Shown piece by piece: positions 42,576-46,392 of a DNA stretch of 64,000 nucleotides (the first letter of the stretch is position 1; each line of letters opens with the position of its first letter). The notes under the pieces are model-generated. The model worked only from the letters and a program-made list of their open reading frames with translations, ran no database searches and had not been told where the DNA came from. The DNA lies in the NCBI GenBank assembly GCA_001949185.1, contig BDGG01000004.1, positions 2,567,620 through 2,631,619 of the forward strand, written 5' to 3'. The stretch comes from Ramazzottius varieornatus (Eukaryota; Animalia; Tardigrada). Position numbers and translations under genes: made by a program.

Positions 42576-45500
42576 ATGAAAGAGTAATTCGTTGTGGAAA
42601 CGGCTCAGTTTGGGATTCACTACTATGACGAAATATGGCTGGTTTGATTGGTTTTTCTTTCCAGTTGGGCACCGGCTTCCAATGGATACGGACACGGATC
42701 GTCGTCCAGCTTTTCCTCCTCCTCATACCGTGGACAAGACCAAGGTGGCTATGGAAGTGGAGGTGGTGGATATGGTGGAGGAGGTCGAGACAAACGAAGC
42801 TTTGGAGGGGAGAATCTGCGCAAAGTCAACTGGAGCACACAGACGTTGATTCCTTTTCAGAAGGACTTTTACGTTGAAGCTCCTACTGTTAGAGAGCGTT
42901 CAATGGTAAGCTGGTAACTCAAACTTCTCCGTGTAGCAAATCATGTTGATGCTGGTTCTTTTCTTCATAGGCTGATGTGGCTGCTTTCTACGCCAAGAAT
43001 CAGATCACCATCCGAGGACAAGACTGCCCTAAACCTGTCCATAGTTTCGATGAGGTGGGCTTCCCTGACTTCATCCATCGAGCTATCAAAGAAAGTGGGT
43101 ATACACAACCCACACCCATTCAGTCCATCGGCTGGCCGATTGCTCTGAAGGGTCGTAACATGGTGGGCATTGCCCGTACCGGTTCCGGAAAGACTATCTC
43201 GGTAAGACGGGTAACTGCGGGAAAAATGTTTGAACTTTTTCGATTGATTTGCTAGCATCAGAGCGGATTGAGTTTTGGCGTATCTAATGCTGACAGGTTC
43301 TGTTTACAGTTTCTCCTCCCAGCTTTGATCCATTTGAAAGCCCAACCGCCTCTTCGACGAGGAGACGGACCCATCGTAAGTCTACTGCGTCTATTGATTG
43401 ATTATAATAGTCCTCTTAACGACGAGCTGTTTATGTCGCAAACGGTTGATTTAAAATTTGAGTTTGCTTCATCAACGGAAATTAGTCATGAGTGAGGCAG
43501 AATTGCGTTTTTCGAAAGTCTCGGAAACGGGAGCGGAAATGCGCGAGTTTTGCGGGGTAGGTTTGTAGGCTTTACCTCTAGAGTCCTGACTAGGCTGAAA
43601 TTCGTGGTTTTCTCTCTGGCTAGTCTCTGTCTGTCTGTCGATATCCCCGACACTAACAGGTATCAAGAAGCCCATACGTGAAACGGTATCTCGCGACGTG
43701 AAGCACTGTAGACAGAGATCAGCTGGGAAATGAAAATTTGAAATTTTGAGTCAAGTGTGCAGAGAATATTTCCGTTTTTCGCTTTCAAGATGAGCTACTC
43801 GAGGGCTGCTTATCTTGAAAGCGAAACTTCGTAATCCACTTTCGAGATCAACACAATCAACGGAGGTTTACGGCCTATCGTGAGGAGGACTAATGCTTCA
43901 TCTGTGTTGTTTCGTCTGTAGGTTTTGGTGCTGTGTCCTACTCGTGAGCTGGCCCAACAGTGTCAAGAAGTGGCGACGACGTTCGGTAAGCACGCTGGTA
44001 TCCGCAGCACTTGCGTGTACGGTGGAGCACCCAAGATGCAGCAGTCGAGGGACCTTCAGAGTGGTGTGGAGATCGTCATTGCCACTCCTGGTCGTCTGCT
44101 GGACTTCCTCGAAAGTGGCAAGACCACCCTGAGCCGCTGTACCTACCTGGTGCTCGACGAAGCTGATCGGATGTTGGACATGGGCTTCGAGCCCCAAATT
44201 CGCAAGATCATGGAGCAAATCAGGGTAAGATAGAGTGATCAAAGCCTAACTGGTAAGCTAAGTGACTTGCGGTGGCTTTGATGAGCCCTTGGTATTGTGT
44301 TCGCGGTTTCGTACAGACGGGCACGCTTCGCCTTTTGATGTTGGCAATACCTTCCTTGGATGTCTGAGCTCTGGTCTTTCTGTTGCCAGGAGTTTTGGAA
44401 TGGCTATTTATCATGATTATACGTCGTTCTGTTGTTTGTTGTAGCCGGACCGTCAAGTGCTGATGTGGAGTGCCACATGGCCCAAGGAAATTCGCCAGTT
44501 GGCCGAAGAGTTTCTTAAAGACTACCTTCACGCCACCATTGGATCTCTCAACCTGTCCGCTAACCAGAACATTACCCAGATTGTGGCTGTCGTCCGCGAG
44601 ATGGACAAGTCAGCTAAACTCGAGCAGCTTCTTCATGAAATCATTCGGGAGAAAGAGAACAAGGTACGAATGTTTATATCTTAGAGCTTTGGCTTCAGAA
44701 ACTTATGGTTTGTGGTTCTAGACTATCATCTTCACCGAAACTAAGCGAAAGGCTGACGATCTTACTCGTCGTCTTCGACAGCAAGGATTTCCCTGTGTGG
44801 TCATCCACGGTGACAAGAAGCAACAAGAACGCGAATGGGTCCTTAGCGGTAGGTGTCTTAATTCTTCTGCAAAAATCTTTATGGTACTCGGCTATGAATC
44901 TAAATTCACCTCTTTGGCTATGATGATACCCTGGTATTGTATTCGCGGTTTCGTACAGACGGGCACGCTTCGCCTTTTGATGTTGGCAATACCTTCCTTG
45001 GATGTCTGAGCTCCAGTGTTTTGCGCTAGAAGTGGCTGAAATTGGCCAAGTGTTTCATTCGATCTTCTTCGTGTCTTGCAGAGTTCAAAGCTGGACGCAG
45101 TCCCATCCTGATCGCCACTGACGTGGCAGCCCGTGGGCTTGGTAAGTGGAGGAGGTTTCCGGGATGCCAGCTGGGCGACGTGAACGCTGAACTGATGCAA
45201 CCACAGTGCAGCTGTTGATTCGATGGGTGTTTGTCGATCAGCAGCTCGTCGGTCTATCCAGACTTTGCCGTGGTCCTTTGCAGAGTTTCCCCTATGGTCA
45301 ATCCAGGCTGCGGACTTGATTTTCTTCCCAGGTTGTTCTCTAGCTCGGTATGGCCGTTGAACGTCTCTGCGGAGCGCTGAGCAAAAAGGAGGACACAGGG
45401 GGGAGGATTCGAGTCGTCCAACGCGGTGTCTGAGGTGGCTGGGAAGCGCGGTTTCAACCGGTGTTTTGCGTCTGCGCAGTGGCCGAGTACCCCACTTTTC

Positions 45501-46392
45501 TCTAGGCTAGGGACTTTCCCTGCTTTTTGAGGCGTCCCTAATGTTCTGCTGCCATTTTCTCTCGAGGTAAGATAGTTACTTGGAAGCGAATGGCGCACAG
45601 CAGCAACCATTGGGACGTCATCTTTGTCGTTATGTTTTGTCCGTCAGTCCACTCGATAGTTATTTTGGTGATGGCGATAACATAACGTTTTTGTGGGGGA
45701 GTTTCTTGGTTAACTTGAATCTTATTTTTCTGTTCGATTATTTTTTAGAAATATTGTGTTTTATTATTTTGTATGATGTTGTTTAGACGTGAGTGACATC
45801 AAGTTTGTCGTCAACTACGACTATCCTAACCAGTCTGAGGATTACGTCCACAGAATTGGTCGTACTGCTCGCGCTGAAAAGGCAGGCACAGCCTACACCT
45901 TCATGACCGACGATGATGCCAACCAAGTCAAGGATCTGATAGCCGTGTTGACAGAGTCCAAGCAAGCCATCAATCCAGAACTGTACACGCTGATGGAGAA
46001 GGCACGAGGAGGTGGCTTCAAAGGTATATTCCACTGGCGAAGTATTTTCTTATGAAGAGAACTGACCAGATTTTTTTTCATGTTGGCGCACGATTTCAGT
46101 GTTCGTGCCTCAAAGCGTGCGCCACTTAAAAACGATTTTCTGAGTTCGTTTGCCTAGGTCTTAGTTGAGCCCAATGGATACAGTGGCAGTTTCTTTGTGA
46201 TGGATTTATAACTACTGTTTTTCTGCAGGTCGTGGTGGACGAGGCTACGGAGGCGGTGGTCGTGGCGGAAGCCGCGGTGGCGGCATGAGCTCGAACCGTT
46301 TCAGTGGCCGTTCCGATCGCGGGGCTGGAGGGCCTGCCCGTCCTAGCTATGGTTCTTCGAATGGAGCTAGTCATCATTCCTCTCGTTGGTAA
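42576..46392 (+). CDS. DDX5: DEAD-box RNA helicase DDX5/DDX17 (p68/Rm62/Dbp2)
   Basis: [77 protein letters not shown]|[15 protein letters not shown]-rich termini. Confidence 0.95.
43408..43892 (+). ncRNA. Large predicted structured RNA in DDX5 intron 43376-43921 (identity unknown)
   Basis: Nested complementary segments: 43408-16/43884-92, 43474-82/43768-76, 43483-88/43587-92, 43624-32/43710-18, a 19-bp hairpin at 43777-43826, and GAAA-capped hairpins. Confidence 0.55.
44274..44370 (+). ncRNA. U14: U14 box C/D snoRNA, copy 1 (intronic)
   Basis: Box C TGATGA (44279), domain A TTCGCGGTTTC, domain B ACCTTCCTTGGATGT directly before box D CTGA (44364-67), terminal stem GGCT/AGCT. These are the U14 18S-antisense elements. 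Confidence 0.9.
44916..45012 (+). ncRNA. U14: U14 box C/D snoRNA, copy 2 (intronic)
   Basis: Box C ATGATGA (44920-26), ATTCGCGGTTTC, ACCTTCCTTGGATGTCTGA (box D 45006-09). Nearly identical to copy 1. Confidence 0.92.
45332..45566 (+). other. Candidate poison cassette exon in the conserved DDX5/Dbp2 intron
   Basis: Acceptor TTTCTTCCCAG|G and donor GAG|GTAAGA define a 235-nt exon with an in-frame TGA at 45358-60. Confidence 0.5.

Follow-up and report, generated by a model that had tools for sequence, protein, structure and literature searches.

The helicase gene and its eighth intron

The subject of this analysis is a 64,000-nt stretch of the genome of the tardigrade Ramazzottius varieornatus (GenBank assembly GCA_001949185.1, contig BDGG01000004.1, positions 2,567,620–2,631,619 of the forward strand), referred to as the window, in whose own coordinates all positions are given. 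On its + strand, at ~41818–46392, lies a ten-exon gene for a helicase of the DDX5/DDX17/Dbp2 type. The eighth intron of this gene—intron 8 in the following—sits at an evolutionarily ancient position, is predicted to fold into an unusual structure, and encloses a candidate exon with an early stop codon. Tentatively, this fold might act as a helicase-sensitive switch toward unproductive splicing.

The family assignment follows the best matches of two exons. Exon 43922–44224 matches DDX17 with an E-value of 2e-46, DDX5 with 9e-43, and DBP2 with 3e-41, the next being DDX23 with 2e-32. Exon 9 (45787–46023, +), read from the sequence as encoding the helicase C-terminal domain with motif VI, matches DDX17 (2.5e-24) and DBP2 (5e-15) over 45789–46022 as its best solved relatives. 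As judged by these alignments, the helicase core is nearest to the DDX5/DDX17/Dbp2 subfamily and not to other DEAD-box proteins. The last exon encodes an RGG/RG-rich C-terminal tail and ends with the stop codon at 46390–46392. The nine introns measure 812, 65, 108, 546, 220, 58, 233, 645, and 205 nt. Hereby, a preliminary description of this DNA—made from its letters alone—is corrected in one respect: it took ~75 nt as the typical intron length, which does not describe a gene whose introns span 58–812 nt with a median of 220. The 645-nt intron that it placed after DVAARGL can be read directly from the sequence.

Intron 8 (45142–45786, +) is a phase 1 GT..AG intron of the form GTAAGT...TTTAG. 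It interrupts the Asp codon within ...DVAARGL|DVSDIKF..., that is, the GL|DV site between helicase motifs V and VI. The 60-nt exon 8 directly upstream (45082–45141, +) was identified by reading the sequence, and the list of open reading frames (ORFs) shows the same peptide entering the intron. For the DBP2/DDX5 intron, both position and length are conserved from yeasts to humans and have been tied to autoregulation (PMC4695336, PMC1920232). The literature hence agrees with the preliminary description, which had linked the intron at this position in yeast DBP2 and vertebrate DDX5/DDX17 to such control.

Traces of this intron position appear in further organisms. Six protein fragments (P0001–P0005 and P0007) contain an unrelated read-through that turns into DV(S/N/E)D(I/V)KF exactly at GL|DV; the closest relative among them, P0001, is 89% identical in the exon. 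In a eukaryotic locus from a JGI metagenome, L021, GL|DV is interrupted by an intron of 891 nt (L021:88-978). This intron folds with a z-score of about −2.2 on both strands and contains an internal GAG|GTACGT donor together with two acceptor-like sites; another sequence, L016, looks like a spliced transcript from that organism or a close one. The metagenome scan with the exon translation returned distant eukaryotes only.

Within the genome used for the copy-number checks (55.8 Mb, 200 contigs), intron 8 occurs only once, and the arms of its hairpins are essentially unique, the arm pattern of one of them—hairpin B, described below—having one unrelated second match. Hence, intron 8 is neither a transposon nor a genome-wide motif, and an origin from a repeat is ruled out. 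A paralogue of the helicase gene on another contig (L002, G000:C2:2889627-2892851, minus strand) shares 67% identity with it over the exon that follows the intron. Its preceding intron (L002 ~1975–2150) shows a perfect inverted repeat of ~35 nt flanking a core with TGATGATG.

Two other introns of the helicase gene, introns 5 and 7, hold near-identical U14/SNORD14-like box C/D small nucleolar RNAs (snoRNAs) at 44273–44371 and 44915–45013 (+). Their scores of 35.6 and 42 bits do not reach the Rfam gathering score of 64. DH31/calcitonin genes are neighbours in the window.

Fold of intron 8 and its internal splice sites

Folded as a whole in the sense direction, intron 8 reaches a z-score of −2.83 against 20 shuffles and of −3.34 against 120, none of which matched it (0/120); the antisense strand reaches −0.91. 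The background, sampled on the + strand of the window as 14 random segments of 645 nt, averages 0.01 ± 0.88 with a minimum of −2.2. Among the other long introns of the gene, intron 1 (812 nt) shows a sense z-score of −0.12, and intron 4 (546 nt, 43376–43921) one of −1.98 in sense and −2.83 in antisense. With its excess on both strands, intron 4 resembles inverted repeats of DNA more than an RNA element; the local structures of intron 4 lie at 43623–43720 (+) and 43770–43864 (−). In intron 8, only the sense strand shows excess structure, which sets it apart from the DNA inverted repeats elsewhere in the window. By these predictions, intron 8 is a genuinely and unusually structured RNA.

The scan of the 64 kb scored 185 local structures with E ≤ −30 kcal/mol. 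On both strands together, 26 of them also show z ≤ −4; two of the 12 on the + strand fall in intron 8, and many others are symmetric on both strands. Since the preliminary description singled out intron 8 after going through the whole window, a look-elsewhere discount is due, which is partly offset by the prior importance of the intron. Elsewhere in the window, very strong local hairpins with z-scores from −6.6 to −12 are found. Those at 4098–4198, 34455–34554, 8081–8181, and 3776–3877 fold on both strands and, thus, resemble inverted repeats of DNA or miniature transposons, and those at 48981–49068 (+), 50336–50420 (−), and 16391–16476 (−) fold on a single strand only.

In the predicted fold, the GC-rich core of intron 8 (45142–45699) falls into three parts: a closed domain of 320 nt, a hairpin of 89 nt, and a hairpin of 60 nt. 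Domain I (45166–45483, +; ~320 nt) is multibranched and closed by an interrupted long-range helix, 45166–45194/45449–45483, with pairing probabilities (P) of 0.65–0.99. Its z-score is −2.76 in sense and +0.45 in antisense. It contains hairpin C (45210–45246, +), whose 16 bp include 4 G–U pairs (−17.8 kcal/mol, z −4.75). Hairpin A (45529–45623, +) has ~36 bp with few bulges and a 5-nt loop; its 89 nt at 45531–45619 fold with −39.9 kcal/mol and a z-score of −5.5 (0/1000 shuffles), which is the 19th by z of the 185 structures of the scan. Hairpin B (45628–45687, +; 24 bp, −18.6 kcal/mol, z −3.3) follows 8 nt downstream. All three hairpins had been seen in the preliminary description, at 45531–45619, 45628–45687, and 45210–45246, and all are recovered here. 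Where hairpins A and B meet (45614–45630), the sequence agrees at 14 of 17 positions with the start of the next exon (45795–45811, GACATCAAGTTTGTCGT), possibly by chance. The core is followed by a U-rich tail (45700–45786, +; 22% GC, 57% T), which comprises the authentic branch and acceptor region and is looser than the core, with mixed pairing probabilities of ~0.1–0.97.

This fold encloses a candidate internal—or poison—exon, predicted from sequence at 45332–45566 (+). Its length of 235 nt is not divisible by 3. Continuing the frame of exon 8, it would encode GCSLARYGR and then an in-frame TGA at 45358, a stop after 9 codons; a literal check of the sequence reproduces the exon and the stop as they had been proposed. 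Its inclusion would bring a premature stop and a frame shift, with two exon junctions downstream. Further acceptor-like sites at 45343, 45505, and 45510 would give exon versions of 223, 61, and 56 nt, each with an early stop, and plain retention of intron 8 stops early as well, so that all inclusion and retention products run into a stop within 0–25 codons. Such a premature stop is weak evidence for a poison exon because any non-coding insert does likewise. Among protein fragments derived from RNA, a query with the exon found none from this species.

The internal acceptor (45320–45331, +) consists of the pyrimidine tract TTTTCTTCCC followed by AG. Of its 15 upstream bases, 12 are pyrimidines; the authentic acceptor of intron 8 has 9, and the authentic acceptors of the gene have 8–12. 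The internal donor GAG|GTAAGA (45564–45572, +) has a consensus score of 7, and authentic donors score 6–8. By their consensus, both internal sites are of authentic-grade quality. An acceptor and donor of such quality in the right order occur in intron 8 alone among the nine introns; the 812- and 546-nt introns hold no such pair by the same consensus count.

Both sites are engaged in the predicted structure. The internal donor lies in the apical stem of hairpin A, where 45565–45570 is paired with 45576–45581 at P ≥ 0.94 in the ensemble, which bears out the earlier claim that GAG|GTAAGA is paired near the apex of this hairpin. At the acceptor, the pyrimidine tract 45320–45329 pairs with a G-rich tract, GGGGGGAGGA (45398–45407, +), in a 10-bp helix (P ~0.9) that leaves the AG at 45330–45331 unpaired. 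If this G-rich tract is blocked, the pyrimidine tract is freed, which costs 12.5 kcal/mol in minimum free energy (MFE). The preliminary description had chosen another partner for the acceptor. The complementarity it noticed is real—CTTCCCAG (45324–45331) and CTGGGAAG (45439–45446) are exact reverse complements of each other—but the pairing is not predicted, as 45439–45446 pairs with 45285–45291 in the ensemble and not with the internal acceptor. A long-range stem said to enclose the exon, 45282–45292/45696–45706, contains a mismatch and G–U pairs and is absent from the MFE structure. Both pairings were dropped, as the ensemble supports neither. Short G-tracts at 45385–45407 (+; GGAGGACACAGGGGGGAGG) make a two-tier G-quadruplex conceivable instead of the acceptor helix.

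How deeply the sites are buried can be expressed as the cost of opening them. This cost is 8.4 kcal/mol for the internal donor and 9.3 kcal/mol for the internal acceptor. For the authentic sites of eight of the nine introns, it ranges from 0.1 to 6.2 kcal/mol at donors and from 4.2 to 7.7 kcal/mol at acceptors, with 7.5 kcal/mol for the authentic acceptor of intron 8. The authentic ends of intron 8 lie at the 12th and 25th percentile of opening cost. The earlier notion of two buried cryptic sites, thus, holds insofar as they are costlier to open than the authentic sites tested; it fails insofar as their burial does not exceed the average of the intron and the acceptor AG is unpaired. A fair statement of the model would be that the core is folded throughout, that the ends are comparatively open, and that the internal sites are buried along with the rest of the core.

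On the opposite strand, a 118-aa ORF (45254–45610, −) overlies the candidate exon. It matches no Pfam family, its sole homologue among 5.8 billion proteins is itself, and it is probably a chance ORF on the A+C-rich strand.

Possible helicase-sensitive splicing and competing explanations

Modeled on these data, the fold of intron 8 is possibly a helicase-sensitive switch for unproductive splicing—through exon inclusion and/or intron retention—and we put this forward tentatively. Normally, the fold would silence the internal sites and leave the ends of the intron accessible, with the U-rich tail keeping the authentic acceptor comparatively open, and splicing would be productive. Abundant helicase would loosen the fold, and the loosened fold would yield unproductive products in which the stop-bearing exon is included and/or the intron is retained. 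Unproductive splicing would, in turn, lower the output of helicase. The resulting loop would be a negative feedback such as has been demonstrated for DRH1 in plants and is inferred for DBP2 in yeast. Use of the exon, nonsense-mediated decay of the product, and the response to helicase are steps that we only infer. The more specific version of the preliminary description, a cassette exon gated at both of its splice sites, seems decidedly unlikely. Equally hard to credit in full is the proposition that an animal DDX5 gene gauges its own helicase activity by a multi-domain fold in the DBP2/DDX5 intron, whose unwinding would bare a stop-bearing exon. Judged from the sequence, the mechanism is a plausible, moderately supported hypothesis with precedent and the pseudo-exon is credible, and the testable evidence is compatible with helicase gating but not specific to it.

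Several points weigh against a helicase-sensitive switch. Ranked by opening cost among all windows of intron 8, the internal sites reach no more than the 65th and 38th percentile. Hence, their burial belongs to the whole intron and is not specific to them. If folding is taken as purely local, nearly all sites of this G+U-rich pre-mRNA look inaccessible, the authentic ones included. Hairpin A with its ~36 bp is long for a helicase substrate, as DEAD-box helicases open duplexes of just 10–15 bp (plant preprint, bioRxiv 10.64898/2026.01.23.701338). In the paralogue, the GL|DV site is also interrupted, and the intron there has only ~65 nt. All structures are thermodynamic predictions, which ignore co-transcriptional folding and proteins. 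Finally, the splice-site scan is a simple consensus count with thresholds picked after the site was known; the evidence of the site pair, which arises in 20% of dinucleotide shuffles of intron 8 at lenient and in 1.25% at strict thresholds, is therefore only moderate.

Much of the same material could be explained by constitutive compaction and the silencing of decoys. The fold would bring the ends of a long intron closer together and hide accidental splice-site look-alikes, with no feedback and no regulated exon, in a genome that uses mostly short introns. An interior that is structured throughout, internal sites that are buried to an average degree only, and authentic ends that form the accessible parts (the two low percentiles given above) are what such a function would leave behind. 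The long-range helix that closes the 320-nt domain fits as well, as do the short introns (58–108 nt) of the helicase gene and its paralogue. However, the 812-nt intron does without excess sense structure (z −0.12), and compaction is hence no general need in this gene. The outermost end-to-end helix is also improbable (0.15–0.2), and compaction leaves unexplained why long introns occur at this position in distant eukaryotes (PMC4695336). On balance, we regard this explanation as rather doubtful. Neutral structure is a further candidate: the GC-rich core might be the remnant of an old insertion or just a G+U-rich stretch, and the splice look-alikes coincidental and unused. The whole-intron z-score of −3.3 lies beyond the sampled background (minimum −2.2 among 14 segments), the excess is limited to the transcribed strand—unlike the DNA inverted repeats of the window—and the sequence is single copy, all of which speaks against chance. 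Nevertheless, 64 kb were scanned and ~17 distinct loci hold local structures with z ≤ −4, so that a 645-nt segment holding two of them is unsurprising. A lenient candidate exon turns up in one fifth of the shuffles, stop codons are expected in non-coding sequence, and the paralogue lacks the element. A chance origin appears unlikely without being far-fetched.

Hairpins A and B might also be intronic microRNA-like precursors, or the core might be some other non-coding RNA hosted by the intron. The ~36 bp of hairpin A within 89 nt, with few bulges, invite this comparison; the primary microRNA hairpins of animals have a stem length close to that. The two hairpins stand in tandem, and the helicase gene already hosts U14-like snoRNAs in two other introns. 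The terminal loop of hairpin A, however, has just 5 nt, and Rfam finds no family in intron 8, neither at gathering thresholds nor at E ≤ 5. The idea that hairpins A and B hold an H/ACA or C/D snoRNA was considered and rejected, as reading the sequence by eye revealed no H, ACA, or C/D boxes suitably placed around them. A hosted small RNA is quite improbable.

Comparison with known helicase circuits

The closest precedent for the proposed helicase-sensitive switch in intron 8 comes from plants. In DRH1/RH46, Burgardt et al. describe a DEAD motif, a hairpin in a long intron that hides an alternative acceptor; active DRH1 redirects splicing toward forms that carry premature stops, be it by a cassette exon, an alternative acceptor, or a retained intron, and its RGG tail adds specificity (bioRxiv 10.64898/2026.01.23.701338). 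The motif shows covariation and is conserved in 123 land-plant species; the authors regard it as plant-specific and predict that such sensors are commoner (bioRxiv 10.64898/2026.01.23.701338). The likeness to the tardigrade gene is considerable: the host in both cases is the closest DDX5 homologue with an RGG-rich C-terminus, and the element sits in a long intron. What is proposed for intron 8 would extend this likeness to a structure over an alternative splice site, whose opening would give stop-bearing products in a helicase-dependent negative feedback.

The architectures, on the other hand, differ. The plant motif is a single hairpin of 19–20 bp; its loop has 3–5 nt, and the base of the hairpin contains the alternative acceptor. 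Intron 8 is predicted to fold into three domains, its acceptor tract is part of a 10-bp helix in the large domain that leaves the AG unpaired, and its clean hairpin carries a donor near the apex and not an acceptor. Compared in this way, the predicted element of intron 8 does not belong to the plant DEAD motif and would be an analogue at most.

Yeasts offer a parallel at the same coding position, and there, too, the intron is unusually long for the genome. As reviewed in PMC4695336, Barta and Iggo (1995) found for intron 2 of S. pombe dbp2 and for yeast DBP2 that the intron is spliced inefficiently and negatively regulates the level of the helicase, which is relieved in a helicase-dead mutant. 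As a difference, the yeast systems use intron retention and nuclear decay—by Mmi1 and the exosome in S. pombe—and no cassette exon is known there, nor have defined structure-masked splice sites been reported.

Vertebrate DDX5 and DDX17 share the same conserved intron with the tardigrade gene. In human DDX5, this intron is said—by the title of a 2011 study by Moore et al., cited in PMC4695336—to be alternatively spliced and to encode a microRNA. Human p68 has been found to control a pool of incompletely spliced p68/p72 pre-mRNA in the nucleus (PMC1920232). A donor sequestered in a stem-loop, as is suggested for intron 8, can also be appreciated in tau exon 10, whose donor lies in a short stem-loop that DDX5 is proposed to open for U1 (Kar et al. 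2011, as cited in bioRxiv 10.64898/2026.01.23.701338). Tau, however, is a target gene and not the helicase's own transcript, and its exon is coding and not a poison exon.

Helicases of the DDX5/Dbp2 type remodel RNA structure transcriptome-wide and are subject to tight dosage control. That the conserved intron takes part in yeast autoregulation has been known since 1995, yet no defined RNA mechanism is established for it. While the general mechanism has already been shown in plants in 2026, an animal version would be new. If the reading proposed here is true, intron 8, with two defined sites and three domains within 645 nt, would make a compact test intron. Animals would then possess a counterpart of the plant DEAD-motif circuit, either independent or very old, located at the very intron that autoregulates the yeast gene, and sensing helicase activity through the fold of the own pre-mRNA might be a general or recurrent solution.

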